Shown: in pieces, positions 14,165 through 55,487 of the stretch | How positions within the stretch are numbered: the first letter of the stretch is position 1 | Layout: each line of letters starts with the position of its first letter | Assembly: GCA_004431415.1 (NCBI GenBank) | Contig: QPMI01000088.1 | Span: 149,947-213,946, forward strand | DNA length: 64,000 bases | From: Cyanophora paradoxa CCMP329 | Lineage: Eukaryota; Plantae; Glaucophyta | Direction of reading: 5' to 3' | Notes under the pieces: generated by a model | Told to the model about the DNA's origin: nothing | Database searches by the model: none | Seen by the model: only the letters and a program-made list of their open reading frames with translations | Program-made: the position numbers and the translations under genes

Positions 14165-17100
14165 ATGAAGGCGCCGCTGAAGGCGCTGGCGGACCGCGAG
14201 CGAGGCTCCAGGCTCCGCCTGCAGGTTGAAGCTGGAGCGGAGGACGCACACGCGCTCCGCCTCACGTACAACAGCCGGAAGCTCGCAGGACGTGCGCTCG
14301 CCCCCCCTGCTGCGCCACGAGGCTTGACATCTAGCGCAGCCTTCGCGTTCAACAATGACGCGGCCAGCGGCGTGTTACTGGCGTCCAGCGGCGGGGCCGA
14401 CCACACCGCGGTGAGCTCCCGCCATCGCAGGCGCACGCTCACCTTATCTCCCCTGAGACGCGGGTACACGCGCAGCTCCAGATCGCGGGAGTCCTCGGCT
14501 TCGAGAGCTACCTGCAGCCGGCGGGCGGGGCGCGCGGCCCGCTGACGCCGAAGCGCCTCGTCAAGGTGGACGACTACGCGACGTTCTTCACGCGGCTCCT
14601 GTGGGCGAACCGCGACGCGGAGGTCGCGTCGACGAGCGAGGAGGGCGTCGTCAAGGTGTACGATGTCCGCGCGCGCCGGCCGGCCGGCTCCCTGAACGCC
14701 CCGCTCCTGATGGGCCTCCGCGAGTCCCCGCGCACGCCCGGCGCCCTCTACGTCTGCTCCGGCAAGTCCGTCATCGGTGCGCGTGTCCCGGGAAGCGCCC
14801 CGGGGCCGAGGGCGACCGGGGCCGCCGGGCGCGCCGCAGCGTGGGACCGGCGGGCGCCCCCCGAGGTGGCGCGGCGCCTGGCCGAGTCGGGCGACCGGGT
14901 GCTGGACGTGGAGGCGGCTCGCGAGGGCGAGCTCCTGTACACGTGCGACGAGACGGGGCACCTGCGCGCCTGGGACGAGCGCGCCCCCTCCCGGCCCCTC
15001 TTCCTCCTCCGCGACAACGTGCGCCGCACCCCCGCACGCACGCGCGCGCTCTGTACCCCCGTATCTGAGGCGCGACCCCGCAGACCGAGGGCCTGGCGGT
15101 GAACTCGCTGCAGATCGACCGCTCCGGGACGCGCCTCCTCGCCACCTCCGAGAAGGGTGCCCTTCTGCTGTACCCCCGCGGCGCCGGGTCCGCCTCACGC
15201 GGGGGGCGCAGGCCACGCGTCGCTCATCGATCTGCTGGCGCTGCTCGCCCCGCGGCTGAACCCCGACCAGCCCGTGCCCATCGACGAGATCCCCGGACTC
15301 CGCACGTGCGCGTACCCCCCTCCGTGCCAGCGCTCACCCTCGGCCCGACGATCTTGCCCCCCGCAGCTTCACAGCCGAGGGGTACAGGAACGGCGACTAC
15401 TTCCGCGGCGCGTACCTCTCGCCGTGCGGGGAGTACGTCGTGGGGGGGTCCGACGACGGCCGCGGGGTGCGCCGTACCCCCCTTTCCTCAGCTTCTCATG
15501 GACCCCGCCAATCGCCGTTTCCCTCAGTTCCTCTGGAGCTCGGCCACGGGTCGTCTGCTCCGCACGATCCAGGCGCGCTGGAACCCTGTACCCCCCGCCT
15601 TCCCGCGCCCCGCCGCTGACGGGCCCCTCAGTTCAAGCGGGAGATGCGCCCCGCGGAGGACGGCGCCCCCGCGCAGTACGAGCCACTGACGCGCCCGATC
15701 GTCCACGTGCGCCGGCCGCCCCCGCCCCTCCCGCACGGACCGCGCAAGGCGAGGCGAGGCGAGGCGCGCCCCCGGCAGGTGGCGATGGCGCCGGTGGGCC
15801 CCGCGCGGCCGCCCCTGCTCGCCCTCTCCAGCGACGAGCTGCTGGGCATCTGGCAGGACCGCCGCGGTGCGGGGCGGATGGGGCCGGGGCCTTCGGCGTG
15901 CCCCCCTCTAACGGCGCCCGCGCAGTGCCGGTGGCGCTGGGGCGGGAGCTGGAGGGGGACGTGCTCGAGCTCCCCCCCGGGGCCGCCCCCGCCCCCGCCG
16001 GCGAAGCCGGGGGGGCGGCGGGGCCGGCGGGGGCGGGCGGGGACGGGGACGTGGTGGCCGAGGGCGACGAGGACGAGGACGCCGACGCGGAGGAGGAGGA
16101 GGAGCAGGCGCCCCGCGCCCCCGCCCGCTTTTCCCCCTTCTCTCGCGTGACGGTACCCCCCCCCCTCCAGGACTGGGAGGAGGACCCGCTGGGGCTGGCG
16201 GTCTTCGAGTGCGCGTACGGGAGGGGGTACGCTGAGCAGGTCGTCTACACGTGCATGACCTGCCGCGAGGCCATGGGGGAGGTCCGCGAGCCCCCCATCG
16301 CCGTGCGCCCCGCTGGAGCGGCGGCGAGCTCATCCCTGCCTCTGCAGAACGCGGCGCACGCGGGTATCTGTCGCCAGTGTGTCGGCTTCTGCCACCGGGA
16401 CCACCAGGCGAGCGGGGCTGGCGGGTACCCCCCGTCGTTGTGACCCGTACCCCAGATCTTCTGCCTGGGCCGCAAGGGCGACTTTCGCTGCGACTGCGGC
16501 AACAGCAGGATGCCCGGTGCCCTTCCCTGTACCCCCGCTAAATCTCCCCTCCCTCACGCTCGGCCAGCCAACCACCGCTGCACGCTCGCGCCCGAGCGAG
16601 AGCCGACGAACCCCCGGAACCGGTGCGGGGGGTTCACGGCCTCCTTGCCTTCGATCGTTTCCGACCCCGCCCCGCAGCTACGGGCACAACTTCGACCTCA
16701 AGTACTGCACCTGCGAGGGCGAGGACGACGGCTGCATGGTCCAGGTTCGAACCCGCGCGGCTCCCGTTTCCTCCCGCCCTGAGGTCGGCGGTTCGAATCC
16801 GTGCAGTGCCCGACGTGCTGGGACTGGTTCCACTTCCGCTGCATCGGGCTCGCCGCGGAGCAGGCGCGCTTGCGTACCTTCCGCATGCTTCTTCCCCATC
16901 CATTGAAGCCGTACCCAGGACATCGACGACGATTGGGAGTACGTGTGCGCGGCGTGCGCGGGGGCGCGGTACCCCTTCCTGTCCGAGTACCCCGACTGCG
17001 GACCGTGCGCGGCTGTGCCCTCTCGCGTTGTGGCGCGGCGGCCGCTCACGCGCGGGCGCAGGGCGCTGCCGCAGGCCGCGGAAGGAGCCGCGGCCTTGGC

Positions 17101-18369
17101 TTCGGCCCCCTCCGCGCCAGCGCCGGGCCCCGGGGCGCCCGGCACGCCGCCGCGGGGGGCCGAGGGCGCCCCGCGATGACGCCGGCCGCCTCCGCGGCGC
17201 CGGGCGGAGCGGCCGCGCCGTCTCCCGAGGCGCCCCTCATGTACGCGCCTGCGGCCGCGGAAGGTGCGCCGCCCCCGCCCCCGCAGGCCGCTGGGCCGAG
17301 GCCGAGTGCGCCCGGCAGGCGGGCCTCCGTCGCTGGGGCGGGCCTGCGGGGAGCCGGCGCGGGGCCGCCTCATGCCGGCAGCCTGGAAGTCCCGCCTGCT
17401 CCAGGCCCACCAGGACGCCATCGGCTACCGCCCCGCCCCGCCCGCCCCGCCCGCCTCCAGCGACGCCCCCAGCGACGCCCCGGCGCCGCCGCCGGCCCTC
17501 CGCGCCCGCTCCCGCTGAGTCGGCGGCGCGGCCGTCGCCGCGGCGGCCGCGGGCGGCCCGCGCGGGCTCTCCGTGGAGCCCTCCGCGGCCGTCGCCATCT
17601 CCTTCGCCACCGCCGCCGCCGCCGCCGAGATCCCCGCCGCCGAAGCCCCAGCCCCCGCCCCGGGCCCCGCCCCCGCCGACGGCGCCGCTGCCGCTTCCGC
17701 GCCGCTCTCAATCTCGGAACAGGCGGCCGCGGCGGCCGCCGCCGCCCAGATGGACCAGGCCTCCTTCGACGCGGAGGCCCGTACCCCTTCCTGGCTCCAA
17801 CTCCCCCCCCCCCTGACCCCGCGCCTCAGGTGAAGCGCCTGATCCAGGCCGGCCAGCGGCCCGAGGCCATGCGGTGCGCCCCTCGATCCCGTACATGTAC
17901 CCCCACGCCGCCGGCCGATTGAGTACCCCAGGCTGGTCATGGGGCGGCTCCTCACGGACGCGATGAACAACGCGGGGGCCAACCGCAGGCGAGCCGGCCT
18001 GCGTCTCGTGCCCCACACCCGCCCCGCCTCGGCCCCTGACGGCGTACTCCCTTCCGCCCGGGCAGGCGGACGATCACGGACCGGGACGTGCACAACGCTG
18101 TCTCCAACCTCCGCATGTCCACCGCCGCCGGCCCCGCCGCCGTGCGCCCCGGCCCGGCCCCCGCCCCTGCGCCTCCTCGAGCCGCCGGACCCTCCCTGAC
18201 CCCCGCCGCCCCGCAGGCCGTCCCGCCCTCGGCCGCCCCGCAGGCGGGCCAGGCCGGCTCCTCGGGCTCGGGCTCGGGCGCCGCGTCCGACGGCGCCGGC
18301 GCCGGCGCGGGCTCGCGGAAGCGGCCGCGGAGGGCGAGGAGCCGTAGCCGGTGCCGCGCCGTTCCTTGA
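14165..18369 (+). CDS. Multi-exon WD40-repeat + UBR-box zinc finger + PHD finger protein (UBR7-like C-terminal half)
   Basis: WD-like repeats (STSEEGVVKVYD, TCDETGHLRAWD, LSPCGEYVVGGSDDG|FLWS), an acidic linker, a UBR box (QVVYTCMTC..GICRQCVGFCHRDHQ|IFCLGRKGDFRCDCGN), NxYGHNF..YCTC, and a PHD finger (MVQCPTCWDWFHFRC..YVCAAC). The 3' end is approximate and this could be two genes. Confidence 0.7.
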
Positions 18370-18954
18370 GGCTTCCCAACAATCCCAGCTGAACACCCTC
18401 CCTGATCATGAGGGCCCTGAAGGCACACAACAAAGAGAGTGGCGGCCTACAATTATCAATGCTGTCTGAGCGGGGGGGGGGGGGGGAGGGGGGGGGAGGG
18501 GGAGGGGGCGGTCCAGTTTGCCTCCTGGAAATCTCTGCAGTGCCGATTTCGAACGGTACGGGAACTGTACTTTTGATTCGCATGCCAGACCCGGACAGTT
18601 CACCGTTATGCCGTGGCACGTGAGCTTTTCACGTAACCATACTCTGAGACCCGCCGGGCCGCCACCCATGATCATGATCGTGGAAGGAATTCCAAACTCA
18701 TGATCAGATGCACTGACTGCTGGTTATAATGGTGCAATTGATGGATCTTAACAGATTCGCGACGCATGACAATATTAATTGCAGGCAAGCAAGCAAAAAA
18801 CTTGAAATAAGTGAATCAGTTAATCATGATCAGTGAATCACGGTGGAACTACTCCCGCATCCGCAGGCGCGTACCCCTCCTCCCTCCCCTCCCGGCCCGG
18901 CGGCTATAGGATTCGAGCCCTGTACCCCCGTTACGGGGGGCAGCGCGGGGGAGG

Positions 18955-19048
18955 AAAAGCAATTTGCTCGGATAGGTCCGGCCAGGCAGGGAGGGGGTTG
19001 CCCCCCTCCCCACGCGCCGCTGTTTCCAGCGGCTCGGCCGGACCATAC
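18955..19048 (-). mobile_element. ~94-bp SINE-like structured element, copy 1
   Basis: Flanked by the 14-bp direct repeat CAGCGCGGGGGAGG (18941-18954, 19049-19062). Near-identical to 38888-38982. Confidence 0.8.
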
Positions 19049-19277
19049 CAGCGCGGGGGAGGTGCTGGCGCTGCCGGCGGGGGGAGGCGCTCCTCTTCGC
19101 CGTCCTCCCGGGCGACCTCACGATCGCCTAAAGCTTAAGGAGTCCGAAGTTCAAATCCCAGCCGGCAAATCGATATACAGGACGACCGATGTAAGAGCGA
19201 CCTCGCCTAGCTATAGCTATAGGGAAAAAGACCCCGCTGAGATACAAAAGAAGACCTACGGAACCTCGCCTAGGACG

Positions 19278-21349
19278 CTATTTTTTATTATCATTGACCC
19301 TAATTATTGTTGTTGACATACGAGCAGACGAGGGACTGGGTGTTGATGCAGCCCGCGAGGAAACACTTATTGGCGGCCCTGTAGCCGGATTCGATGTTAC
19401 TGGTGCAAAAGAAGTAGCATCGCCTGCGTGGCAATATTTAATCAGGAGGGTACAGTGCAGCACAGGCCGAGGGGCGCACTGGTTCGACTTGGTGGAGCCG
19501 GAGGGGTACGTGAGGGAAGCGATCGCCGACGACCTGCCGATGCTGTTCGACGTCATGACGCCATTGGCGCCCCACGTCGTCGTCGATCCGTCCGGCTGGA
19601 TGACCGTGACGGAGGCCGAGCCCGTAAACCCGCAGCTCTTCGAATACACGCCGGCGGTATTGCAGCTGAGCCCCTTGGCCATCCACACGCCGAAGTCCTG
19701 CGCACCGCGGCTCGGGGGGGGAGGGGGGGTGGGAAGAAAGTGGGGGTACGAGGCCTCTACCGCACCGTGGCCTCCACGTTGGGCTTCGGCGTGCCGGACT
19801 TGTTGTAGTAGAGCATCTGCGTGACGCTGAGCATGTCGACCGACGTCGAGAGGTTGTCGAGGACGCCGCCGCCCGTCTGCGTCGACATCTGCGCGCGGGT
19901 CAAAGAAGAAGAGGGGGGGGCAGCTGATCGTGATCTATAGGACTGAAAACTATATATAGATCGGGCAAGAGTCGGAGCTCGAAGGGGGGAGGGGCCGGGC
20001 GCACCAGGCAGAGGCTGCCGGTGTAGGTCGTGGTCTGGCCGTTCACAGTGTACGATTTCTGCACGGCGCGCGCTCTGGAACAGTCTGAAACAGGCCGATC
20101 GCGAGACATGCGCACGGTGACGCTCCCGCAGCTCGTCTGCGAGGTCGTGCCGAACATCGTCTTCAGGTTGTACTGCCTGATCCTGGCGGCCGCGTGGGCG
20201 AGCGCGAGCGGCGGGATCTAGGCATCGCAGATTTGGCAGTATGCTTGCATCGGTCTCATGTGGAGACAGGCACACTCTCTATATCTAACCGTCCCTTATG
20301 CGCAGGTGATCATGAGGCTCACGATCCCGTAATCTGGAGGAGGCGGCGGCCGGCGCCCCCCGCATCCGCCGGCGGCAGCGTTTCGAGCTCGATCGCCGGA
20401 GCGCCGGCGTACGTCATGACCGGGGTGCCTGCAGCGAAATCAGTGCGAATATCGATGTCGTCTCAGTGACCATGAGGGGCCCGCACCGGACTTGTCCGTG
20501 AGCGCGCCGTCCTTCGTCTGGACGTCTGCGGCGCGAGTCGGCGGCCGCGCGGGGGGAGCCGGCGCGGCCCGGGCGCACCCTTGGTGAGGTTCACGACGGC
20601 AAAGGAGAGGCCGAAGACGGCGCCGACGACGAGGACCGAGAAGGCGACCTGGCGAGAGATGAGAGATGCGAGAAGGCGATCGTATATTTCGCGAGGCAGA
20701 CCATGATGATAGCAAAGCCCTGTCGACGCGCAGCCGGGGTTCGGACTCGGCGGCGAACGCACATGCATACAAAGGCGCGCACCTTGAAGAGCGCGGAGCG
20801 GTTCTCCTCGTTAAAGAACTGCGGAGAGGCTCGTTAAAACCAGTCGGCCGCGGGGCGCGCGGCGCGGGCGCGCCTTGTCCATGAGCAGCGCGAGCTCGTG
20901 CTGGTCGATCTGGCCGTCGCCGTTCCTGCGCGCGGCGGCGCGTGAGATTGCGATCATGACCGAGCGGACCCGCGCTCTACACGTTGGGCGGCTCACACGT
21001 CAATCTCGGCCATCAGCGCCCTGTAGCGGGCCAGCTTCGCCTGCGGGGGTCGCGTCGGGTGGGCCCGGCTTCGGCCGGCCGCGGGAGAGGCCGCAGCCCA
21101 GACACGGCGCATGCGCAGGGGCGGGGCCCGCGCCGGGGTCGAAGGGCGCGCACGCGGTTGATCGGGTCGTTGCGATGGCGGAGCCCCGAGAGCGAGACGC
21201 GGACCGCGCCTTCGGGCGCCCCGGCCGCGGGCTGCTGCGCCCGCTTCTCGTTCGTCGGGCTCGGTGGAACGAGGGCGTAATCATGGTCGGGGGCGCGAAG
21301 GCCGGGGGCGTGCGCATGCGCGTGGCTGACGACGACGGAGCTGGCCATG
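19278..21349 (-). CDS. Multi-exon EF-hand + transmembrane protein with Ser/Thr/Gly/Cys-rich ectodomain
   Basis: EF-hand-like NGDGQIDQHELALLMD, TM segment VAFSVLVVGAVFGLSFAVVNLTK, DVQTKDGALTD, the motif GRRLLQ, then S/T/G-rich exons. Ends are approximate. Confidence 0.6.
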
Positions 21350-21689
21350 GAGCTCGAGCGCGCAACTGTCGTCGCAACTGCCGTGGGGAAACTCATAGCT
21401 GCGGCAGGCGTACTACGGTAGGCTTCGCTGCAGGACCACTGCAGGTCAACGTTGGCTACCGGTAGCCTACTGGGCCTAGTATAGCAGCCAGGCTGCAGCT
21501 GTAAGCCTGAAACGCCCCTAGTAGCTACATATATATATATATATACCTGCGCCGCTGCGCATGCGCGGCCATGCGCCGCTGCGCCTGCGCATGCGCGGCC
21601 TGGCAGAAGCTATAGCTACTGCCATCCTACTGGTCAGTGCCACTAGTCAGAAGCTACCAGGGTACGTATGACGCAGAAGACATCGATGT

Positions 21690-21830
21690 GTTCCGTAACT
21701 TCCGGACCAAGTTCCGGTGCAGAAATTCCGGAATTCCGGGAGTTCCGTGGACCGGGAACTCCGGAATCCGGTCCCATTATCCGGATCGATATCCGGATCG
21801 CGAGGACGCCGGATCCGGAAAGTCGACGTC
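21690..21830. repeat. Cluster of about 11 (T)CCGG(A) motifs
   Basis: ...cttccggacc aagttccggt gcagaaattccggaattccgggagttcc...ctccggaatccggtcc...atccggatcgatatccggatc...gccggatccgga. Confidence 0.6.
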
Positions 21831-23512
21831 GGCGGAAACACAAAACGCACGGCAATTGCAAGGAGGGCGACGTTATTCCTCCCGAAGTAGCTCGTAGGCG
21901 TGCGGCTTCGCGTCCGGGAAGAGCTCCTCGCGAATCGTGATCGGGCAGCTGCGGCGGCGCCGGCGGGCTCGAGCAGGGCGCGCACGGGCCCGAGGATCGG
22001 GGCGAGAGATCACTGAGTCAAGAGCACCTCGCCGAGTCGGTGCCGGAGAGCACGATCGCGACGGGCTTCAGGGGCCGACCGTTGACTCAGTGAGCTTTCC
22101 GAGCTGTCGCAGTGCGCCCGGCCGCGGAGTGAGGCCGCGGCCTCTTACGTGTGCGCATGCCTTCGGCCTCTTCTTGTGCCTTCGAGGGCCGGGGCGCGGG
22201 TGGTTGGGTGGTACCTGGATCCGGTCCCGGATCCCGGAGGAGGGGGTCCGCGAAGGCGGCGGGGGAGAGGAAGGGCACGAAGGCCGCACTGGGGGTACAT
22301 GGTTAGGGGGGGCAAATTTTAAAGCGAAGCGGGGGGCGCGCCTTGACGCAACGCCTGCCCGCGCGCCTTCCGAAATCGATGGTCCTCACCTCACGCCCCG
22401 CGCCCAGGCTGAGCTAGGGGCCGCGGGGCCGCTTGCGATCGTCGAGACCCCAAGAAATCAAGGTGCGCGTCGCGAGATTCCGAGAGCGTCGCGGCGGGGC
22501 GCGCGGGTGGGCGGGAGCAGCGGTTGCCTCTTAAGCTTCCTCTAGCGGAGGCCAACGAAGAACGCTTAGGTTCGCCCATCCCCGCGCCCGCCTCCCCCTC
22601 CGCCGCCGCGCCGACCCTTAGTGCACGGTCGTCGAGTCTTCGAGGGATCTGGAGCGCGCCGGCGCCGGCATCCTTTCTGAACGCCCCGAGAATTCCCGAG
22701 GCGGCCGCGCGTTGGCATCGATCGCGAGCCTCGACGCATAGCGCGGCGCGGGGCGGGCGGGAGGACCGGAACGTTAACGATCGCGAACGCCGAGGAGCCC
22801 TTCGGGTTACTTCCACCGACGGAAGCGGCTCGGTTCGCATCTCCCCGCGCCGCTCCGACCGCCTCGCGCCAACGTACTCTCCCCTCTCAAATGCCCGTCG
22901 CTCGCTTCGTCGCAGCAGATAACAGCCGTCCTCGGCGCCTATAATGCTCGCCCATGACATTCGTCGCAGCAAAATACGAGGTCGTCTAGCTATAGCCCAT
23001 GAAAACGAAATTCAGGCCCTGAGAATTAAACTTGAAACCTCAGTACCAGTGCCACGAATTTGAAGCGGTCCTCAGGACAGAAAATAAGGACACGACATCC
23101 GACACTGAGAGCGGCAAAAGCAAAAGTTAAGCCCTCCGAGAACCTCGATCGGAAATTCCATGCCCAGCGTGCAAAATGCAGCGTGGGAGGTATGTTAGGG
23201 GGTGGGGGGGATGAGGTGAAAGTAGTGGTGAGCAGGGGCCCCGGCGGCGCCTGTCAGTGCTCACTGGGGCTTGGAGCTTGTCCTCCCTTCCCAGGCCTCT
23301 GCCCTCCGCCCCCCCCCCCCCCCCCCCACCCTTCCGGATCCCCTCCCCCCCCCATGCATATGGCCATCCGCCGTCCACACCTCCCGCCCCCCGGCCTCCC
23401 CGCTCAGCCCCTCCGCGCCGATTCCCATCTAAAAACTGCAGCCAACTCTTCAGGCTCACGTAAGAGACCGATCTCGTTCGAAAATCATGCAAAGCGGGCT
23501 GCGAATTCAAAT

Positions 23513-25696
23513 TCAGAAGGCCGCGACGACCTCAGCTGCTGCCGCGGCCTCGATGGCGAAGGGGTCTCCCTCTGCGGCCTCGGCCTCGAGCTCGCCGGCC
23601 TCGAAGTCGGCCTCCGCGCCGAAGGCCTCGTCCAGCTCCTCGAGCTCCTGGTCCTCGGCGTCCAGCTGGGCGTACGTGCGACCAGTGCAGTCAGTGAACT
23701 CGCCGACGGCGATCTTGCCATCCTTAGCTTGTTGCCAGTGGAGTAGAACGACTTCCCGAAACGGGTCTGCAGCTCGGTACGTACGCGGACAAATTTAAAA
23801 GGGCTCAGAACAGCGCACAATAAATTTAAACGTGTGCGGGCCGCGGGAAACTGACCGTCGTACAGGCCAATGATCTTGCTGGCTTTGGCGTCGTCGACGC
23901 CCATTATCGTCTTTACGTCCTCCACGTCGAGGCCGTCACGGTCTTTGATGTAGGCGATTACTGTCGAGTCGCCGGGATTTATGCCGTACTTGAAGACTGC
24001 TTCGACGGACTTGTTCAAAAGAAACCGCAGGGCTTCACTGCGGACCGGAGGGGGTCTGGCAATGAATCGCAGGGCGATAAGCGATGCGCGATGCGGCAAT
24101 GAGCGCACGGTACGGTCTCCTGTCTGCTGGCGGACAAGACGTAAAACGGTTCACCCGAAGCTGCCTTGCATTGGGCATCGATCCGAACTTCCTCCGTCGG
24201 GCTGCGACGCGTCATCAGATTGAACTCGTGCGATCCTGAATGCTGCAGGCCACGTGTCCACGGAGGCTTACCAGGGACCACACGCCCTCGAGGTGCCTGG
24301 ACGCAGCTCTTCAGTCAGTATTCTTCAGCGGAAGCATTTGCGACGAGGGGTGGGCCGGACCTCCGTTAATGGGGTCAAGGCGGTAGAACTTGGCATCCGA
24401 GCCGTTGCAGTAATTAAGGATGGTTAAGTCGTCCATGGCGTTCATTGGGGCCACGAACAACTCGTCAACGAGGGGCGTTTCGCTGCAGTCGGACGTGGAG
24501 AACGTCTTCAGAGATGTTCCTTTTATAGATGGGCTATAGCTAAGGAAAATCTTGAGTTAGACGAACTTCAGATTGCAATCCCCGCCAGCAGCGGCTTACC
24601 AGCTGCAGAGCGTGCAGGCCTTCGTGGTACCTGCGTGAAGCTCGCTTGTCAGCTGCAGAGACACATCTATCGACGCTGGATAGAACAGAAAGCACCTCCG
24701 TTTGTGCCTTCAGCCGTGTAGAACCTGGTTCTTTCTGTACTTGCCTGTACTAGACGACGCTGGATAGAACAGAAAGCACCTCCGTTTGTGCCTTCAGCCG
24801 TGTAGAACCTGGCCCCGCTCGAGGCGGCGCATGTATCGCTCGCGAGCTGCTCAGTCAGCGTCCCCTCGACGCGCGTGCTGGAAACGAACTGTCGGCTGTC
24901 GCAGTTCTTCCAAGAGAAGGTCTTCACCGTCGTCGCCGCGGGGCTGCAAACGAATCATCACCGAGTCGGTACCGGTGCAAAAAGATATGTTGTTCGAAAT
25001 TGCTTTGATTGGAGCACGCCAGATTTCGATCGCGAGCTCACCAGGGGATGCAGGTCCTCGTGGTGCCTGCGTGAAACTCGTCGGTCAGTGCACTTTCGAC
25101 TGCATCTGCAAATTAAAGATCGCTGGGACGAAAAAGTACCTCCGTTTATGCCGTCCGCCTGGTAGAAAAGAGCGCCCGGAGCGGCGCAGGCGTCCTTGAT
25201 GGACTGATTAGTCAACGTCCCTGCAACGCGCTTGTCGAAAGCCGCCGTCCCGCTGCAGTCAGTCGAAGTGAAACTCTTCACCGTCGTCGCCGTAGGGCTG
25301 GGATCGGAACACCGGCACCGTCAGTACTAGTCTCCAACACCGAGAAAGAGGTGAAGTTGATTACCACGCCGTGCACGCCCAGGCTGCCGTAAAAGAACCG
25401 TTAGCGGGCTCACGTGCACGGCATCAGCCGCGCGCGGTCGCTCCAGCGGACGCACTTGTTCCGTCTGTGGCTTGGGGCGACTTTGACGCGGAGTAGGCGA
25501 CAACATCTGCAGAGCAGACCGCAATCTTGTCGCTGTCGCCTAGGAATCTGTCCTTGACGGTCTCAAAGTACGTGCGGTTGCTGGCCGTGTTCTGGGTGCA
25601 GTCGTCCAGAGACCGCCATCCGCTGAGATCAGAGCTGGTGGCGCCCATCGCCGCGTCGCTGCAGACTGCAGTTGCACTTTGACGAATATTTGACAC
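23513..25696 (-). CDS. Multi-exon hypothetical protein with three Cys-containing repeats and an acidic C-terminus
   Basis: Three similar units (KSFTSTDCSGT..DACAAPGALFYQADGINGG / KTFSWKNCDSR..DTCAASSGARFYTAEGTNGG / KTFSTSDCSET..NYCNGSDAKFYRLDPINGG). The last exon reads ...EAAAAAEVVAAF* with the stop at 23513. The 5' end is uncertain. Confidence 0.55.
24671..24812. repeat. 58-bp exact direct duplication
   Basis: 24671-24728 is identical to 24755-24812, with a 26-bp spacer. Confidence 0.9.
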
Positions 25697-25996
25697 TCTA
25701 GATCTTGAACTGAAATTTTGTTGAGGATGTTACGATTTTCGGGTTTTGTCGAAATTAACTCTCGACGAACATTTCTACGTTCCATGGCCAGTACCTCAGA
25801 TTAGTCTTCAGTCGTTTATTGCTTTGCCGATTCCGCAACCTCGATTCAGTTTAGACACTTCGCCTGCTTCGAATTCGACTCTCCCCTCTAGTGGTGTCTT
25901 TTGTTTCGCCCCTCCTATTGTTCTGCCACCTCCGCCTCCTACGAGGCTACGACAGCGTCTTCTACCGTGTGGCACTATAATACCGCGCTCACTTAT

Positions 25997-26061
25997 TTAC
26001 CGCGGTACCAAATTACCGCGCCGAAATTGTGACGTACCGCGGTAATTTGGTACCGCGGTAA
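25997..26061. repeat. Perfect 24-bp inverted repeat (hairpin) built from TACCGCG units
   Basis: TTACCGCGGTACCAAATTACCGCG (25997-26020) and its reverse complement (26038-26061), with a 17-nt loop. Confidence 0.9.
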
Positions 26062-27189
26062 TAACCTGCTGCTACGTTGCTCCGGATCCATATAGTGCCC
26101 CCTACAATTAACGTATAACGCCCCATACAAGCCTCCAAATATCCAATATCTGCTATTTCTAGTGCGACGTCGACTATAGCTAGTACTGTCGTTTCTTCGA
26201 ACTTTAGATCTGGATCTTCGACTGTAGTTCCTCGTGCTCGTTTTCCTTATTTTCTGCGCCCCCGTGCTCCTTGTCGTTCAAGTGTGACTAGTACTTCTGT
26301 GTCGACATCCTTGAGCTCTTCTGCTACATCTCCTCGTGCTCGTTCTTCTTATGCTCGTGATCCTTCTTGATTATGTGATTGTGATAGTCTAGAATCTCTA
26401 GATCTGCTGTATCTTTGATTTGTGATTTGTTATCCGTATTATCACTACCTACGGCTACGGGCCCGGGGGGGTTCGCCCCACCGTAGTCTCTCAAAAACAA
26501 AAGCTATAATATTATAACCGGCCATCACGGGATTCACGGGCCATCACGGCCCATCAGCCGGAGACTGCCCGGAGTCCGGAATATTAATTAATCCGGATCT
26601 CGGCCGCGGCCGCGACGGCCCGCGAGCGATCTGTACCCTTGTGGAACCATTCTATACCCTCATTGGATTCCCATTGAATTTGATTTCCCCCCCCCCCCCC
26701 CCCTTCCCGGGGTAATTACATAGCCGCGCGCGGCTGGGCCGCTGGGGGCCCCCATTAAGAAACAAAGAGAGGCCATGGCCAGTGGCCACCCTCACGCCTT
26801 GAAGCCCCAAGACCCCAAGACCACTCCTGCTCCGCAGGGACTCGCTTGTTGTAATTGAAGTTAGTGATGAGCTGGAGGAATATTAATCAAGATCAAAAGC
26901 TCACCGAGTCGACGTCACGTGCAAGCTCATGATAGTACAATTAATATTGATGATCATGAATCCTTTACAGATTCGCAGTGCATGACAAGCGACAGTTGTG
27001 CATGACAAGCGACAGTTGCAAGCAAAAATAGAATGACTTGATGAATCGGCCACCTAGGCCTGACCTATCAATAATCGAAAACGGACGTGCAGGCTATCAT
27101 ACTCGACCACTTAAGCTAGCGGGGCTTGCCAGGCCGAGGGAACCCCAAAACTAGGTGCAATAAGAGCCGAGCGTGCGGCGCGATGGGGA

Positions 27190-30100
27190 TCAGGAGGTGG
27201 AGGGGAGGGCGGCGGCCCAGGAGGCGCCGGGGCAGGTGTCGGTGTAGGGGTGGGCGCTGGAGCCGGCCTGGGCCTGCACGACGGCGCTGAACTCGGACTC
27301 GCTGAGGGAGCGCTTCACCATCGCGCACGCCCGCGTCGCCAGCTGCCCCGCCCCGCCCCGCCCCGCCGTCAGGAGGAGGAGGGCGCTGGGTCCAGGAGAG
27401 GGCCCCCGCGGACCGCGGCGGGGGAGGTGTCGTGGACGCGGAGGGTGCGGTCCCGGGCCGAGAAGGTCGCCACGCTCGCCCCGCTGCTCGAGAGGGCGCC
27501 CCCGCGCACGTCCGTGCCCCCGCTGAAGAACCACGGCTCCTGCGCCCCGGCGGCGCCCGTCAGGCGGGGCATCAATGCGGCGGGAGGGGGGCGGGGCGGA
27601 CGTCGAGGGGCGACGAGGCGCCGTCCAGCACGAGCAGCTGGGCCCCCGGGAGCACCTGCGGGGCCCAGGCGCTCCCTTCAGAGGCGGGGGAAGAGCGGGG
27701 GGCAGGGCGATGGGCGCGCCGTGCTCTCGGCGAGGAGGAGGGAGGAGGAGGCGCTGAACTTGACGAACTGGCGCCCGTAGGAGAGGTAGCCCACGGTGAG
27801 CGAGCTGCCCCCGCCGCGCACGTGAGCGGCGGGGCCCGCGGAGGGGGCGGGGGCGGGGGCGGGACCTGAAGAGGGTCCAGGCCTGCGGCTGGGCGGGGTC
27901 CGACGCGTTGAAGATGCAGACGCGGTTCGTCGTCGCGTCGTCCGTCACCAGCCACTGCGGGTCGCGCGGGCGCCGGCTCAAGGGAGAGGGCGAGCAGAAA
28001 TCGGGGGCGGGGGAGGGCGCGCCTTGCCGTCGGGGCTGAAGGTGACGGCACGGACGGCCGGGCAGCTCGGGGAGAGGGGGATGGAGAGCTCCTTGTCCCC
28101 CAGCACGCCTGCGAGGGCCGCGCGGTTCCGAGCGGTTACATTAGAGCTGGGAGGGAGCGGGCGGAGGGGGCGCGGGGGGCGGACTGGAGGTGGAGAGGAG
28201 GGTGCTGGTGCGCCAGAGGTAGACGGCGGTCGAGTCGCGGGAGGACTCCATCGGGGGCGCCGGCGCCGCCAGGAACGACCCCGAGATGCCCACCTGCGCC
28301 CCCGGCTGGAGCGTCGGGCGGAGCCGCGCCGGGCGGAGCGCGGCGGGGGCGCGGACGACGAGGCTGTAGACGCGGTAGTTGGACTCCATGCCGCCCATCC
28401 GGAGGACGAGCTTGGCGCCGCCGGTCGCCGCCGCGTCCCGCCGGAACGCGAACATCCCGCCCTGTCATGGGGGCGAGCGCGTCAGGGCGGGCGGGGGCGA
28501 GGGGGGCGAGGTGGAGGGGAGGCCCCGCGCCTTGGAGTCGGCGAGGACGATGAGGCGCGAGTCGGCCGAGGCGTGCACGGAGACGATGACGCTGGACATG
28601 ACGGCGACCGCCGCCGACGCGTCGGCCGCCTGCGCCGCCGCCAGGTCGATCGCGACGCCCGTGCCCGGCAGGCCCCCCGCCGTCGCCCCGATCTCGTACA
28701 AGGAGGCTGCCGGCGGTCGAGCCCGCGGTCAGCGCGAGGCCAAGCGGAAGGAACTGTAAAGCATCCCGCGCGCACGCGCGCACCGCCGATGGCGAGGTAC
28801 CGCCCGTCGGGGGTGAAGAAGACCGAGTCGACGTAGTTCGCCGAGGTCGAGGCGGGGTAGCTGACGGCCGGCGCGAGCGTGCCCCCGGCGTTCAGGCCGT
28901 ACCGCGACGCGTCCCCCGCCTGCGCCGGCGGCGTCGGCCGAGAGGAGCGGGGCGGGGCGAGGGGCGCGCGGGGGGAGGGGGGGGGGGGGGGGGGGGGGGG
29001 GGCGGGCGGGCGGGCGGGCACCGCGGGCAGGCGGTAGACGTGGACCTGGGACGACTCGTCGAGGGTCATCGCCACGCACCAGGCGGCGAAGACGCCGAGG
29101 GAGGCGTCGGGGTGCGGCGCCGTCCACCCCATCTTGCCCGTGCACGAGTGCTCCAGGCCGAAGGCCTGCGCTCCCGCCCCGCCGCGTGAGCCGACGGGTG
29201 CTCCGAGGGGCGTGCGCCCCGGGCGGGGCGGGGCGGGGGCGCCTTGCTGGAGAGGAGGTTGGTGCCGTCGCTGGCGTAGCGGGCGGCGGCGAGGGCCGTG
29301 TCGAAGGCGGAGAACTCGGCGTTGACCGACGCCACCAGCCACGCGTCCCCCTTGAAAAAGTGGATCGACGTCGCCCCGAGCAGCTGCCGCCCCGTCCGTC
29401 AAGGTCCCGCTCGAGCGCCGCGAGCCCTGCGGCGCGGGCTCCACGCGCCTCCTCGGTGAAGACAGTGAGGAGCTTGAGGGGCTCGCCGGTGACCAGCTGG
29501 AAGCGGCTGCGCGCCGACGGCCCCTGCCGCGCCGCGTCCCGCGTCCGCCACAGCCCGATCGACCCTGCGGCGGGTGTTGGACGCGACCGACGCGCGATTG
29601 CCGGCTCAAGCGGGCCCGCCGACCGTCGGTCGAGGCGGAGGCGACGAAGTCGGCGCTCGCGTCGGTGTGGAGCGCGAGCAGCTTCTTGCCGTGGCGGAGC
29701 AGCTGCGAGAGGGGCGCCCGCGCCTCGGGATCAGCCGCGCGCCAGCCGCGTGGGGTCGCTTTGGGCTCGGGCGCCGCACGCACGCGGGCCGGGAGGCCGT
29801 TCACTCCGGGGTCGACGAGGTCCGCGGCGTTCGTGGCTGCCGAGCGCGAGCGTCCAGTCAGAGGGATGCGCCACTCCGGCTCGCGATCGGCCCCCAGCGG
29901 CGGGCGGAGGAGCTCGGGCGCTAGCGCACTGTAGACCGAGCCGGAGTTGTCCGCCCAGAACAGGAAGTTGTTCGTCGGGAAGTGGATGAGGTTGATCTGG
30001 CGCGCCAGTCAGGGGCCGGGGCGGCCGGCGAGGGCTCGGCGGGCGGGGCGGACGACGTGGGTCATGTCGAGGGTGATGCCGGGGACGGAGACGCGGGCGG

Positions 30101-33100
30101 AGTCCTCGTAGCCGACGACGTCCATGTTGGGGTCCGCGAAGGTCTGCAGCAGCACCAGCGACCCCGACGAGCCGCCTGCGCCCCGCGCGCGCGCCTCGGT
30201 CGCCCGAAGACGCCCGCGGGCTGCCAGCGCGGCGTCGGCGAGCGCACCCATCGCCAAGAACGGGGCTCTACTCGAAGTCCGAGTCGGCCCGTTCGCGAGC
30301 CTGCGCCCGCGTCAAAAGCCGGTACTCGCACGCAGGGCGCTGATCGAGAATGATGGCGCACGCAGAGACGGTGAACGGGTTGCCCCCCGACCCCGTCACG
30401 ATCTGCGGAATCGGAACACGGCCGTGAGACGGCCGCCGGTCGATCCCGAATCATCGTTTAATCGGGCTCGCCGTGGTGTAGCGCATGACGGAGGTGGCGG
30501 CGGAGTTGGCGGTGAGGTTAAGGGCGACGGCGTGGAGGGCGAGCGTCCCGCCCGCGCCCGTCTGCACGGCCACGAAGAGCACCCCGCAGTCCCGCTCCCG
30601 CAGCTGCACCGACGCCGTCGAGATGTCCTTCGTCTTGACCGACCAGTTCTGCGGCGCGGCGCGGCGCGGCGCGGTTGAGCTCAGCGCGGCGCCGCGTCCA
30701 TCGGATCCGACCGAGCGTGTCAAGTACCGGGCGGAGCTGGAACATGGCGTACGAGCTGCGCGGCGAGTTCGCGATGCCGGACGGCGTCATCCCCGAAATG
30801 TTGTCTGCGCTCGGGTGAGGGGGACGGAGAAGTGCTAGCGGGGCAGCTGAAAGAAGTGCGGCTCACAGAGCGTGAATTTCAGGGAATCCTCGTCAGTCAC
30901 GTTGGGCGAGACCGTCATGAAGACCTGACGAAACAACAATCAGACGCCCGAGCTTCAGATTTCAAGCCACGCCTGAGGCCCCCCGCGCGCGGGGGTGCCC
31001 GGGGGCGGACCGTGCCGGCGAGGCAGGTCCAGATGGTGGTGCGGGAGGCGGCCGAGTTGCTCGAGAGGGCGGCCGCGTCGGAGAGCGTCGCCTCGACGCC
31101 GGAGGAGGCCCAGGCGATGAACTTGCCGTTCTGCTGCATGAGGAGCACGTCCTGGTTGATCCACGCGAAGCCGACCCCGATCCCCTCGAACGTCCTCGTC
31201 GCGATCTGCCGCCGATCGCGACGCCGCGTCAGCCAGTCGCACACGCGCGATTCCAAAACTGTTCCCCCGCACCGTGGTCTTGGAGCTCGCGTCGATGACG
31301 TCGGCGCGCATTGTCGTGAAGCTCGACGTCGTCGCGCTCCCGTCGTCCAAGCACGCTGCCGGCCCGGCGTCAGCGGCCGGCCAACGCTCGACGATCACGA
31401 AGCTTAAGCCGGCGCGCACTCCCCGAGACGCAGGTGAGGGCGACGACGTATCTGCGGCTCCGGCTGCGCGCGCGCGCGCGCGCGTGTCGGCGCGGGCGGC
31501 CGCGGTGGAGCTGGGTTAGAATTGGGAGCCGGCCGCGGGCGCACCTGACGGCGAGCTGGAGGGCGGCGGTGGGCGTCTTGGTCGAGGGCGGGCACGCGAG
31601 GATGTCCGCCGACACGGCGAACGAGCGCGCCCCGGCGATTGAGCTCAGGTCCTGCCAGCGCAGCACCGTCCCTGCGCGCGCGGAGCGGCGCGGTCGAGTC
31701 GGGCGGGGGGGCGGCGGGGCGAGGCGCCTCGCTCACCGTCGGAGAAGAGGACGATGAGGTCGGAGCCATCCTCGGCGACCGAGAGCTTCTGGGGCATCGC
31801 CGACGCCGTCACGGTCGCGTTCGAGCACTGACGGCCGCCGGTGAGGGCGAGAGAGGGCGAGAGAGAGCGGCGGCGAGCGAGCTGGGCGGCGGGTCACCTT
31901 CGCCTTCAGCTCCTCCATGTTCCGGTACAGCGACACGCCGCCGACTCGCGTCAGGAGCTGCGGGGCCGGCCCGAGTCGGCGCCGGCTCGACCTCGAGTCG
32001 GATGGAGAGCAGAGCGGGCGCCGCACCCTGCGGAGCGTGTTGACGGCGTACCGCTCGGTGACCAGGTCCCTGCTCGAGAGGTTGAAGGCCTGGCGCACTG
32101 CGCGGCGAGGTCACGCGCGCCGGCGCCGGCCGCGCTGGGCACGCGGGGCCGGGCGGACCGCCCTGGAGGGCGTAGAGGATGCCGAGGTCCGCCCACGCCG
32201 TCTCGTACGCTTGCCCTGCGCGCGCGCCACGGTTGGACGAGCCCTCGTCACAGGAAGCGAGCCGAGCATTGACAGGACAAGGCACCGGCGCTGGAGAGGG
32301 AGTGGGCGGTGTTGACGGCGAGCGCCGTGACGGCCTTCTTCTCGGAGGCCTCCGCCAGTGTCTGTGCCTTGCGCGCCTCCTCCGCCGAAGCTTCCGCGAG
32401 CGCCCGCGCCGCGGTCGCCTCCGCCGCCGACTTCTCCGCCGCTATTCGCGACGCGTTCGCTTGCGCCGTCGCGTTCTGAGCCGCGCCGCGCTCAACGGTC
32501 GGTGCGCGGGGGGCGGCGAGGCGGCGGAGCGGCGCACCTGCGCGATCAACGTCTGCTGCTCTGCCACCTCTTTCGCCGCCTGCGCGCGCAAGCCGCGGTG
32601 AGCGCGGTCGGAACAACCAGCTCGCGGCGCCGCGCGCGCACCACAGCGGCATTCCGCTGGACCGTTGCTTCTGCCGCGCTTGAATCCGCCTGCAGCTTGA
32701 GCTGGACCGCCCACCCGACGATGCCACACGCTGCCAATAACAACAGAATCTGCAGGGCGTTGTATCAGCGCAAAGACGAGAAGGCGACGGACAACGAGGT
32801 GCACTGCACTCGAACCGATAGAATGGACAAAGAAATGATCATCGTGACGATGCGCTTCTCTCGTTGTCGCACGAGCTGCCTGCTCATCTCCACATAGCGG
32901 ATCTGCGAAGGCGGTGGCCCGAAGACGACAGCTTCAACGTGGAAGAGCAAACCGCGTCAGGGGTCGGTTTGGGTTTCTTGTCCGTCGTCAGCGCCTGCTG
33001 TATGACGGAGGCCGCGAGCTCCACCTCTCGCTCGTTGGATATGAGCAGCGTTTTTGACTCCTGTTCTTCCATCCTGCCAGGCCCTGAGGCATCAGCTCCT

Positions 33101-34985
33101 AGCAACCTGGGGGTGCAGAACAGAAAGACAGACCACTGGGCGCATCCCGTGGCGATGCGCGTGAGCACTTTGATGTAGTCGGCGTCCGACTGGCACGCGG
33201 CCACGATTTGCCCGATCTGGGGTACGGCATTCGATTTGGTGGAGGCGGGGGGCGGAATCGCGCATGGGTACCGCGATGTCGAAGTCGTCCGAGACGCGCG
33301 CGTAGATCTGGGGCCGTAGGCGGGTCACGTCAGATGATCATGAGGGGCGCGGGAAGGACGCGTCGAGGGGTGCCGGGGCGGACCCAGTTGATGCCGGCGA
33401 GCTCTTCCGGGATGTTGTTGCACTGCGGGGGCGCAGTCAGCGCGGGGGGAGTGGGGCGGGGGAGGGGGGGGGGGGGGTTGGGGGGAGGGGGGGGGGGTTG
33501 AGGGGGAGATGGTGGTGGGGGAGAGGGGGTTGAGGATGTGGGTGGGGGTGGGGTGGGGGTAGGGGACGGTGGGGAGGGAAGGAGGAAGGATACGAGGGGT
33601 AGGGGACGTAAAGGGAGGAAGAATGAGTGGAATTGGAGATGCAGAGGAAGAGCAGGAAGAAGAGGGGTGGTTGAAGTGGCGGGGGGGGGGGGGGGGGGAA
33701 GGGGAGGGCGAGGGGGGGGCGATGTTTGGAGGGACGGGGGGTGGGGAGGGGGTAAAGGGAGGAATGGGGAAGAAGGTGGGGGCTGGAGAGCGGGGGAGGG
33801 GTCCAGGCGAGACGTGGCAAGCCCGCCCGCGGCAAGACCACGGGGAAGGGCTTCGAAAGGGGGGGGGGGAAGGATGGGGGGGTAAGACGGCACCGGCTCA
33901 TAGAGGACAGGGAGCAGGCGCTTGTTCTGCTCGAGGGCGACCTCGAGCTCCTTCCTGCACTCGTCGCTTGCGATCCAGTCCTGCGCCGTACCCCTCTTCA
34001 GATGCGGGGAGGGGGAGGGAGCGAAGGAGGGGGTACCGGCGACAAGACGAAGATTACGTTCTCGCTGCACTGGATCCCCGCCTTGATCATCGCGCGCCAG
34101 TCGACCTGGGGGGCTACGCGTCGAGCGGTGCGGCGCCGCGGGCCTCGGAATGCGCGTACCCCCACGGGAATGTCCTCGTAGTCGACCCAGAGGGTGAGGT
34201 TGAGGCCGCGCAGCGCCTGCGGGGGCGCCGGCGGTTCAGCGGGGCGGGCGGGCGGGCCGCGCGGGCGGGGCGGGGTGGGGCGGGGCGGGGCGGGCGCACG
34301 CGGACGAGGCCCTCCACAAAGACCTTGTTGCGCCTACTGTACGAGACGAAGGCCTGCGGGCGGCCGGTCGGCGCGGCGCGCGGCGCGCGGGGCGCGGCGG
34401 GGGCGCACGTTGCGCTGGTTCGTCTTCTTCGTGAAGGCCTCGAGGGCCTGCGCCGCGCGGGGCTCGGCGGGCGAGCTCGAGGGCGGAGGCAGCGCTGGGG
34501 CGCACCTGGTCGGCGCGGCGGGCGCGGAGGGCGTGGGCCGCCATCGCCTCGGGCCCCAAGGAGCCCATGAGCCCTTTAGCGATCACGCTCATCTTGGCGC
34601 TGCTGGCGCCCGGCGGGCGCTTCGTCTCCGCGGTCCCCTGCGCGCCGGCCGCGGCGCCGGCGACCGCGGCTGCAGGCGGGTGCGAGGGAGGCGCCGGTGC
34701 TGCTGTCTGCGGCTGCGCAGAGCTCTTTTCCGCACTAAAATCCGGTGACTCGAGCTGCAGGCTCTCCTCCGCGGCTCCGCCGGCCGCGAAGGCAATGCGC
34801 ACGACGCCGGCATCCGACGAGGGCTCCGTGCCTCCGCGCCCCGTCTGTGTCTGTTGTGCGTACTGAGGTGTCTCTGGGCCGGGATTGAGTGCCGACGGCC
34901 GGGGCGGCGAGTCCGAGCCGAGTTTGGGAGGGCTCCGCGGAGCAGAACCCGGCGGCTCGGGGTGCACGCGTGCCTTGTCTGGCAT
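27190..34985 (-). CDS. Multi-exon TIR (TIR_2-type) - TM - coiled coil - divergent WD40/beta-propeller protein
   Basis: TIR motifs AFVSYSRRNKVFVEGL, LWVDYEDIP, DWRAMIKAGI and SDECRKELEVALEQNKRLLPV. Linker PKPTPDQIRYVEMSR, hydrophobic TM, Ala-rich coil, propeller blades (SVFFTPDGRYLAIG, AVTFSPDG), and C-terminus LATRACAMVKRSLSESEF...PYTDTCP. Confidence 0.8.
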
Positions 34986-35268
34986 GATGCCGACACTAGC
35001 TAGCTAGCTAAGTCCTGCGGCGACGGCAGCCCAGGCGTCCACAAGCTCGGCGGCTTCGCTCGGCCTACGGGGCATGCGGCAAGCGCCCGCGAAGCCGCGC
35101 TGGGTTGCAGAGAAGCTAAGTACGCTGGCCGGGCCGGGCGGGTAGCAAAGAGACCAGCTCCGAACAGGAGACCGGCCGCCGGCTAAGATGAGTCTGCGTA
35201 CCCCCCTCAAGAAGCAAACTTCCCGAGAAGCTGTCCTCGGCTGCTAGCTGAAGGCGCCGCAGTCGGAG

Positions 35269-38186: not shown

Positions 38187-38887
38187 GCTGCCCGGAGTGA
38201 CTGCTCCCTCGATCGTGATCACGGGGGTCAATTTTGCGACGCTAGTCTTCACGATTGCATGCTGCATACGCAGGCCTAGTCCCTTTGTAAAATTCGGTCT
38301 TGGTGAATTGCCGGCCCCACTCTTTTAGACACAAGCACTACGGGGGCCGCCCGGCGCCCAAGCGACGCAGAATTCGATCTCGAAAGCGAAGACAAGCAAT
38401 GGCAAAGGATGCAGAAGCGGCCGCGGGCATAAACAGAAAGCGGAAAGAGAGACTCTAGAAGAAATATATTCGAATCAGGAAAGTGATCTCGGCGTCAAAA
38501 GAGGAAGCCAGAGATAGATCTAGAGCCAGAGATGCTGTATATCGTAGTACGCGAACGAAAAGGAGATCTAGAACCACGCGGGCGAGCTCTAGAGCAGAAG
38601 TGAGAGATCGAGAAGTGACAGATCTGGTAGGATCCGGAGCCTCGTATAACCACCAACCAGGCCGGCGCCCGGGGAGAAACGAGGAGAAGGCCGGGAAGGA
38701 GGGGACGCTGGAGAAAGGCAGAGGAAACGCGATCTCGATATCGACAGCAGCTGCAGGCAGGAGGGCCGCGGCCGCCCCGGGAATCAAATGACGTCGGCAG
38801 GCGGGCATGCGCACTCTAATTCATATTGCACTTGACTGGGCAGCTGCAGGTAGGCGACCGTCGGTCGCCCGCGACAGTTCTAATTAT

Positions 38888-38982
38888 TAAAAAAAAAATT
38901 TGCTCGGATAGGTCCGGCCAGGCAGGGAGGGGGTTGCCCCCCTCCCCACGCGCCGCGGTTTCCAGCGGCTCGGCCGGACCCT
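38888..38982 (-). mobile_element. ~95-bp SINE-like structured element, copy 2
   Basis: Flanked by the 15-bp direct repeat GACAGTTCTAATTAT (38873-38887, 38983-38997), with an A10 run at the left (+ strand) end. Confidence 0.82.
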
Positions 38983-39778
38983 GACAGTTCTAATTATAAT
39001 CAGGATCATGAGCGACGCTGCGAATTGCTGGCCTTCGAATTCAGCTTTCATTAAATTAATGAGAAACCAATTCTCACACTGCAGCTGAAGCACATAATGG
39101 AATGCAAAAGACATGCACTGACAGCACTGCACATGCATCTCTCAGAGTCTAGATTGAGCTACGTATGTTTACGTTACCTAGGCCTAGGCCTACTATCTGT
39201 GCGACACGTTCAAAGACAATGCGCGATATACTGCACGGGGACTAGTACTGCGGCAGTCACGACTTGGAACGATCTATTCGAATGCGCAATCGAATCAGTA
39301 AGCATGAAACTAAATGCGAAAAAGAAAAAATCAAGCAAATGCAGAGGTTGAATCATTATTAAGGAATACATATCGATCACAAAATGGATGCATATGGAAT
39401 GACGCAAACCGCGGTCGTGATCGGACATGAGTTAATGCGTATGTACTACGGTATACGTGAAAATTAACTATATATATTGTGTATATATACGCGTACATGA
39501 GAGAGGAGGAAGGAGAGAGAGGATCCCCGGACTGAGAGGACCCGGGAAACTCGAAGGGGGCGGAAGGCTTGCATGATTACGTGAAAGATCCAATGCGAAG
39601 GTTCATACGATTGCTTTGCATTAGAAGTAAATGCGGAGGTTAATACATATGAGAAAAAAACTGGAGGCCGAGGATCTGGCGGGCGACTGCGATATTGAAA
39701 GATGATGTGCCCACGCAGTTTGCGATACATATCTACGTATATACGGCCTTGCAGCGAGGATTGTGCGCGTGGAAAGGG

Positions 39779-49817: not shown

Positions 49818-50668
49818 TCCTCGCAACTGCAACTGGCCCCGCTGCAGCTCCCTAGGCCTCAGCTCCGGATCCAGGGCGACGATTGCTCCGAGCTTAAGCC
49901 GCGGCCGGACAGCTGCCCGCTAGAAAACATGGAGCACGATCGAATGCAGCTTCGGAAAGCTTGTGGCGCTCTGCAGCTGGCAGCTGGCTGGCCTCCGGCT
50001 GTCCGGACCGGAGAGCGATCTAGATCTCCCGAGAGCGTGTTGCCGGCGCCGAAGCAAGCGCGCACGCGCAACCGTCCCGCGGGCCGCGGCGCCCGCGCGC
50101 TTGAGTCTTCGCCGAGTTCTGATTCGACGGGCGTTTCGAAAATCACTACGACGGCCGCGGGGCCGGCGCGGGCGTTTCGAAAATCACACCAGCAGATCTA
50201 GATCTAGAGCCGGAACTTGGATAAGTTGGCGGGAGCGTTATAATTAACGTTGGAAATTAACAGGCCTAGCCGCCTAGGCCCTGATCATGAGGGAGGGCGC
50301 GCGCACGGCGCGTGCGCCGCTGCGTCGCTGCTTCTCGATCCTTCAGCCTGCAGCTGGGCGCGCGCGCCGGCCGCGGCGCCGCGCGCGGCCGGATCGATAT
50401 CGATGAGGAATTTGCAATGCAGAGGGTGCGTATCACTGCCGCAGATCTAGAGTCGGCGCAGACAGGACGGTCAGGACGGTGACAGGACCCCGACTCCCCG
50501 CCGGCGCCGCCGCCCGCGGCCCCGCGCCGGTTCGCCGGCGCCGGCCCACCGCTTCGGTACCCTAAGTTCCGGCAGGTCGTCAAAGGGGATACCGAGCTCA
50601 CTTCGTGGGGGATACCGAGCTCGCTTCGTTCGCGACGTCGGCATCTCGCAAGGCAGCCCCGCTTCAAA

Positions 50669-55396: not shown

Positions 55397-55487
55397 GTGT
55401 CACAGGTGTCACAGGTCCATCCCAAACTTTTGGAAATTCACTCTTTATAGGAGAAACTTTGGGATAGACCTGTGACACCTGTGACAC
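55397..55487. repeat. 30-bp inverted repeat with tandem TGTCACAGG iterons
   Basis: GTGTCACAGGTGTCACAGGTCCATCCCAAA (55397-55426) vs TTTGGGATAGACCTGTGACACCTGTGACAC (55458-55487), 1 mismatch. Confidence 0.9.

Follow-up and report, generated by a model that had tools for sequence, protein, structure and literature searches.

The window, a stretch of 64,000 nucleotides of Cyanophora paradoxa DNA, carries two copies of a short element, both lying on the minus strand (19048-18955 and 38982-38889) and 97% identical to each other. The genome of this alga, of about 100 Mb and with 67.6% GC, available as a draft of 2012 and as a long-read assembly of 2019, has intron-rich genes, and the genes in the window likewise appear intron-rich. 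Each copy is enclosed by a target-site duplication (TSD). Their parts, in window coordinates, are as follows.

19049-19062, minus: upstream TSD of copy 1, CCTCCCCCGCGCTG, an exact repeat of 18941-18954
18955-19048, minus: copy 1, 94 nt, made up of GTAT (19048-19045) and a 90-nt core (19044-18955)
19044-18955, minus: core of copy 1, starting with GGTCCGG and ending with AAATTGCTTTT
18975-19044, minus: Y-shaped core of copy 1 as folded by RNAfold, 70 nt
18955-18974, minus: 3' linker of copy 1, TATCCGAGCAAATT, followed by the T-rich GCTTTT end
18941-18954, minus: downstream TSD of copy 1, CCTCCCCCGCGCTG, the first C of which may belong to the element
38983-38997, minus: upstream TSD of copy 2, ATAATTAGAACTGTC, an exact repeat of 38873-38887
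38889-38982, minus: copy 2, made up of AG (38982-38981) and the core (38980-38889), which ends in AAATT(T)10
38888: a single ambiguous A following the core of copy 2
38873-38887, minus: downstream TSD of copy 2, ATAATTAGAACTGTC, 15 bp

The original prediction described the locus as a small mobile structured RNA with a 14-bp TSD, and proposed a second copy with a different 15-bp TSD and almost the same 5' end. Both statements were borne out. The duplications are exact, of 14 bp (possibly 13) at copy 1 and of a different 15 bp at copy 2, and the cores of the two copies differ at just three positions, namely one A to C change and a GC in the tail that is replaced by TT. The A to C change in copy 2 disrupts one U-A pair of the 7-bp arm described below. 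With the covariance model R1, copy 1 scores 118.3 bits and copy 2 scores 116.7 bits. Two probes of 23-25 nt (n = 2) matched at these two places only, with a chance expectation of 0, and no third copy was present in the 64-kb window, either by BLASTN at word size 7 or by the covariance model with its filters off.

The TSDs of the two copies are unrelated in sequence and unequal in length, 13-14 bp versus 15 bp (n = 2); the uncertainty of one base at copy 1 arises because the 3' edge of other copies may take in one more C. Between the upstream TSD and the core a few extra bases are found at the 5' junction, GTAT in copy 1 and AG in copy 2. The TAT is shared by 5 of 18 junction contigs and may be a templated 5' end of a subfamily. 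At the opposite side the element ends in UAUCCGAGCAAAUU-Un, and clear microhomology between this U-rich tail and the start of the TSD is absent at both sites.

Fold, strand and known RNA classes

On the minus strand RNAfold gave exactly the structure that had been proposed, a three-way junction with two GNRA loops. It consists of a closing stem of 10 bp, an arm of 7 bp with a GAAA loop and an arm of 12 bp with a GCAA loop, the junction being formed by four unpaired bases (A, GC and C). The 90-mer of copy 1 folds at -64.8 kcal/mol (z -7.25), an energy equalled by none of 200 shuffles, and the 70-nt core, which includes three G-U pairs, folds at -60.5 kcal/mol (z -7.0). For copy 2 the minus strand gave -57.1 kcal/mol (z -5.05).

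The G-U wobbles and GNRA loops had also been said to work on this strand only, which is true but of modest weight. The complement of the 70-nt core is devoid of the three G-U pairs and of the GNRA loops, but it still folds strongly, at -54.4 kcal/mol (z -6.8). As judged from these predicted energies, the strand asymmetry of the fold is real but modest, about 6 kcal/mol. Since the complement folds almost as well, the structure alone is also compatible with a hairpin that acts at the DNA level. The strand preferred by the fold is in agreement with the polarity of the T-rich tail, the T-tailed strand being the one that has the G-U pairs and the GNRA loops.

No known RNA family matches the element. 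Rfam at the gathering threshold gave 0 matches over the whole window, and at the locus a cutoff of E ≤ 10 gave chance miRNA-like hairpins only (22 bits versus a threshold of 70 bits); ARAGORN found neither tRNA nor tmRNA in the window. Self-cleaving ribozymes (hammerhead, HDV-like, twister and hatchet) were considered and rejected, no Rfam ribozyme model being found at E ≤ 10. By hand, the hammerhead was discarded on account of the four unpaired junction bases and the absence of both CUGANGA and a second GAAA, and the HDV-like fold on account of a misplaced P1 partner and a strand order that forbids a nested fold.

The family in DNA and RNA runs

Logan contigs of the same organism, from two DNA runs (X5 and X1) and two probable RNA runs, were aligned to positions 18850-19150. 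The DNA runs contributed 142 (X5) and 71 (X1) aligned contig pieces. In X5 the depth of the flanks was 45-54, versus a summed depth of 17,000-35,000 over 18960-19044; beyond 19047 the summed depth was about 240, and below 18949 it was 45. The family amounts to roughly 400-700 copy equivalents, a rough figure taken from a summed k-mer depth of 20,000-35,000 set against about 50 in the flanks, in an organism whose assemblies total about 100-120 Mb. The two copies of the original prediction have consequently to be corrected to a number of the order of hundreds, as given by contig depth in the DNA runs. Sorted by identity, the X5 pieces fall into classes of 64 (99% or more), 32 (95-99%), 30 (90-95%) and 16 (below 90%). 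The first class, at 99% identity or above, makes up 45% of the pieces, and so many near-identical copies point to recent activity.

The contigs also locate the edges of the element. At the 5' edge the junctions lie at 19044 (13 contigs) and 19047 (5 contigs), and at the 3' edge they lie at 18953/18954 (9 contigs) and 18961/18963 (8 contigs). The junctions at 18961/18963 are preceded on the plus strand by A6-A8, which are T-runs in the element strand, and the tail varies among copies, being GCTTTT in some and T6 to T10 in others, always at the same end. Consensus agreement beyond the junctions is just 0.45-0.6, which means that the flanks are unrelated. The 3' half of the element is covered at a depth some 1.6 times higher, and a few contigs exit internally, at 19008, 19036 and 18994; the 3'-biased depth and the internal breaks fit some 5' truncation.

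At least three variants are distinguished by the presence or absence of the 5' TAT, by the GCTTTT or Tn tail and by an insertion of CAGCTG. The latter, a palindrome of 6 nt, interrupts the closing stem on its 3' strand (18982-18983, core positions 62/63). The subfamily that carries it occurs in X5 as well as in X1, and also in one RNA run, where it accounts for about half of the local depth.

At the site of copy 1 the element is present in each of the two DNA runs, whose contigs showed no empty allele. Exact-pattern scans for copies elsewhere gave 0 in JGI metagenome contigs, in IMG/VR and in GTDB genomes, and a spurious ORF across copy 1, used as a protein-word query for other copies, yielded no candidate.

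No contig of the RNA-like runs covered the unique flanks of copy 1. All the RNA-run contigs that hold the element extend into unrelated sequence, the element thus being part of longer transcripts; these are assembled contigs, blind to a free RNA of 94 nt. Two of them, of 679 and 738 nt (runs X15 and X17, depth about 1200 and 1000), carry the 5' 62-66 nt of the element (18979-19044) fused to unrelated upstream sequence. The depth of these two contigs implies that another copy sits in a very highly expressed transcript, and this copy might have been co-opted or might serve as a source locus. No A box was recognised by eye, and the best B-box-like stretch agrees at 6 of 10 positions. The absence of A and B boxes noted in the original prediction is therefore sustained, and ARAGORN and Rfam detected no tRNA-like head. 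The Pol III-like origin that the same prediction had offered is unsupported, there being no A or B box and the RNA contigs holding the element in longer transcripts only.

A number of known mobile classes were tried as candidates and rejected. For a MITE, a fixed-length TSD directly at the terminal inverted repeats (TIRs) is expected, whereas the TSDs here are unequal, of 13-15 bp, and an asymmetric stretch of 20-24 nt of linker and tail separates the inverted repeat from the TSD on one side only. Replitron or other HUH elements were discarded by the termini, GTATGG... and ...GCTTTT or Tn, with neither a terminal direct repeat nor an RG target, and Helitrons by the lack of TC...CTRR or TG...TTGT ends. 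The 5'-truncated tails of Chlamys/Penelope elements differ in their targets, (C)n or (CA)n, and in 5' ends that are scattered. An introner was set aside because the RNA contigs keep the element and a GT start is present at copy 1 only.

Origin and mode of mobilisation

The two copies and their relatives in the runs probably represent a family of non-autonomous non-LTR retroposons of about 90-94 nt, SINE-like and head-less, that is moved by target-primed reverse transcription. The description of the locus as a discrete, mobile and non-autonomous element of about 94 nt has been strengthened by the TSDs, the polarity of the T-tail, the high copy number and the sharp ends. A variable TSD, a variable T-rich 3' end, extra bases at the 5' junction, a high copy number and discrete ends constitute together the signature of target-primed reverse transcription. 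Several features of SINEs in the strict sense are present, namely the short unit, the many copies and the TSDs of variable length (n = 2), and a head derived from tRNA, 7SL, 5S or snRNA or an internal Pol III promoter is absent; lacking a Pol III head, the element lies outside the strict definition. It does possess one mark of a LINE-dependent retroposon in the broad sense, strand polarity with a variable T-rich 3' tail adjoining the TSD.

In the mechanism that we propose, RNA of the minus-strand sense of the window would be made from a few source loci or, otherwise, by host read-through and trimming at the base of the stem. The Y-shaped domain, together with the 14-nt linker, would act as the handle recognised by the reverse transcriptase of a resident LINE, the putative partner. 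The U-rich 3' end would then sit on the nicked target DNA, with cDNA synthesis proceeding to the 5' end of the RNA, and a second nick placed 13-15 bp away would generate the duplication. The 64-kb window contains no RT element and no autonomous partner with the same tail or Y module, and two probes for Dualen 3' ends did not match in it either.

The tail finds parallels in plants and green algae. A strand ending in U had been regarded as an anomaly for a SINE, an opinion that cannot be maintained, as T-rich tails are known in SINEs of both groups. The plant SINEs Au, p-SINE and ZmSINE have (T)n tails, and the SINEs of Chlamydomonas and the Dualen (RandI) LINEs have tails of (ATT)n, (CTTT)n or (CTATTT)n; in the consensus of Dualen and of these SINEs the T-rich repeat comes 2-5 bases after one or two GC-rich hairpins. 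The present element resembles the T-tailed plant SINEs mobilised by RTE or L1 (Au and Au-like, p-SINE1-3, ZmSINE2) in being short and dispersed and in having a sense strand that ends in (T)n. It differs from them in that they have tRNA heads with A and B boxes and are about 120-350 bp long, whereas here a three-way junction of 70 nt forms the entire body and no tRNA-like head is found. Also not evident at the two sites of the element is the RTE signature, in which the TSD begins with a T some 10 nt past a T stretch.

With SINEX and SINE-1..6_cRei of Chlamydomonas, and with Dualen, the element shares the arrangement of a GC-rich structured module, a short linker and a T-rich end, and with the SINEs also the lack of poly(A) and the variable TSDs. 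The Chlamydomonas SINEs, in contrast, are 405-535 bp long, have tRNA heads and have some 80 nt or more in common with a named LINE. The shortest family in the curated TE table of Chlamydomonas reinhardtii is of 222 bp, and nine 10-14-mers of the element gave 0 matches in the part of the curated TE library of this species that was examined.

Retroposons with no head are known from other lineages. EhSINE, the trypanosomatid RIME, NARTc and SIDER, and the R2 SIDEs are head-less and depend on a partner LINE that recognises their 3' end. Like EhLSINE of Entamoeba, with its 'Unknown' head, the element would be a non-autonomous, LINE-dependent non-LTR sequence with no head derived from a Pol III gene. 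The known head-less retroposons are usually of 250-600 bp and share their termini with an identified LINE, whereas the element, of about 94 nt, is near the lower size limit.

Retropseudogenes of small RNAs have to be weighed as a further comparison. Those of Y RNA, U6, 7SL and BC1/ID combine a discrete 5' end, an end-to-end closing stem and a 3' U-run with TSD-flanked copies, and Pol III RNA copies mobilised by L1 carry poly(A) after the U-run. The copies described here might accordingly be retropseudogenes of a functional and abundant small structured RNA, copied in trans by LINE machinery, although we consider this unlikely. One or a few master genes with a Pol III or an upstream snRNA-type promoter would supply an RNA having a cellular job, and its mobility would be a by-product. 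The discrete 5' end and the very stable fold with two GNRA loops agree with such an origin, as does the constant GCUUUU 3' end of one subfamily, which resembles a Pol III terminator; copies with no internal promoter would be dead on arrival, comparable to those of master-gene models. The T-runs of T6-T10 in many copies, however, exceed the remnant of a Pol III terminator and reach a length of 10 that sets the element apart from Pol III RNA retropseudogenes. At least three subfamilies and about 45% of near-identical copies suggest several active sources instead of one master, and a parent RNA family is absent from Rfam even at E ≤ 10. No contig of a short discrete RNA was seen, a form that standard RNA-seq contigs would lose.

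If the unit were just the 3' end module of some longer element, a LINE or a SINE, the copies would be extreme 5' truncations. LINE insertions are often heavily truncated at the 5' end, the median insertion of Chlamys in Chlamydomonas being 128 bp, and the depth in the DNA runs is 3'-biased; in addition, Dualen 3' ends are formed by GC hairpins followed by a T-rich repeat. Such truncations predict 5' ends spread over many positions, and a common longer upstream sequence in a minority of the copies. What is observed is a fall of the summed depth of about 100-fold within 4 nt, from 19044 to 19048, a drop at the 5' edge that argues strongly against a mere truncated tail. Of the junction contigs listed for one run, 18 stop at just two positions, beyond which the sequence is unrelated (agreement 0.45-0.52). 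This explanation is hence very unlikely. Less probable still, to a degree that makes it highly improbable, is mobility at the DNA level, by which the element would be a MITE or a non-autonomous element recognised through its hairpin as a single strand (HUH/Replitron- or Helitron-like), the inverted repeats being either protein-binding hairpins or TIRs. The 10-bp closing stem can be read as TIRs, either strand gives a strong fold (z -7.0 and -6.8) and Replitron-1 of Chlamydomonas makes TSDs of variable length. Replitron-1, however, has TAAAGG terminal direct repeats and inserts 5' of RG, and replitrons have fuzzy right ends, while the present element has no terminal direct repeats of the TAAAGG type, no RG target and no Helitron ends. 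Moreover, its TSDs do not abut the inverted repeat, from which they are separated on one side by a 20-24-nt asymmetric linker with the T-run; the length of its homopolymer tail varies, and a variable TSD of 13-15 bp is not a known signature of cut-and-paste transposition.

A more specific proposal, also quite unlikely, is that the family consists of a processing-defined retroposon devoid of a promoter, or else that the Y RNA is an unrecognised abundant class of small RNA in glaucophyte-like algae. In the former case, copies located in transcribed regions would be cut at the base of the three-way junction and so released from the host transcript, and a LINE of the dual-endonuclease type, independent of poly(A), would bind the GNRA-capped Y RNA of 94 nt as its specific ligand. 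If the processing-defined reading is true, no smaller self-propagating retroposon module would be known, and the element would provide a LINE RT with a minimal RNA handle.

Returning to the head-less retroposon, the element is most likely a tidy repeat family of LINE-dependent short retroposons and gives no ground for a new class of mobile element. It is plausible that the family is undescribed so far: a search of the literature found no paper with a repeat-family description for Cyanophora paradoxa. Repeats make up 29.4% of the genome of this alga, and unknown repeats 11.5% of the genome. If the family is unannotated, the repeats of this alga, largely unclassified, would gain a very small retroposon of recent activity. 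At about 94 nt, essentially a three-way junction and a tail of 20 nt, the element would come close to the minimal RNA on which poly(A)-independent LINE machinery can act, and could be used to find the partner LINE and to dissect the recognition of the 3' end. For annotation the family is relevant as well: transcripts contain copies, in at least one case at very high expression, and the copies break short-read contigs.

Other features of the window

The end of the window is occupied by an AT-rich block (54000-64000) of 39-42% GC, versus about 70% elsewhere in the window. It contains long intron-less ORFs on the minus strand, at 56524-57885 and 57889-61134, whose products are not on record and for which a word search gave no relatives at E ≤ 1e-20. 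The block fits a Polinton-like insertion, and Cyanophora paradoxa carries PLVs.

The plus-strand ORF at 35558-37015 has a short match to Asn_synthase (PF00733) over residues 99-142, and is probably one exon of an asparagine-synthase-like gene. The other nine of the 10 long ORFs tested had no Pfam match, which indicates that most long ORFs in the GC-rich DNA are probably spurious. Imperfect runs of a G/C homopolymer-like character, of 49-63 nt, are found at 28970-29019, 33444-33497 and 37582-37644; they lie in sequence that is GC-rich and probably intronic. Short tandem duplications of 20 bp (two units, 100% identical) and of 23 bp (two units, 95%) are located at 26978-27018 and 50585-50629, respectively.
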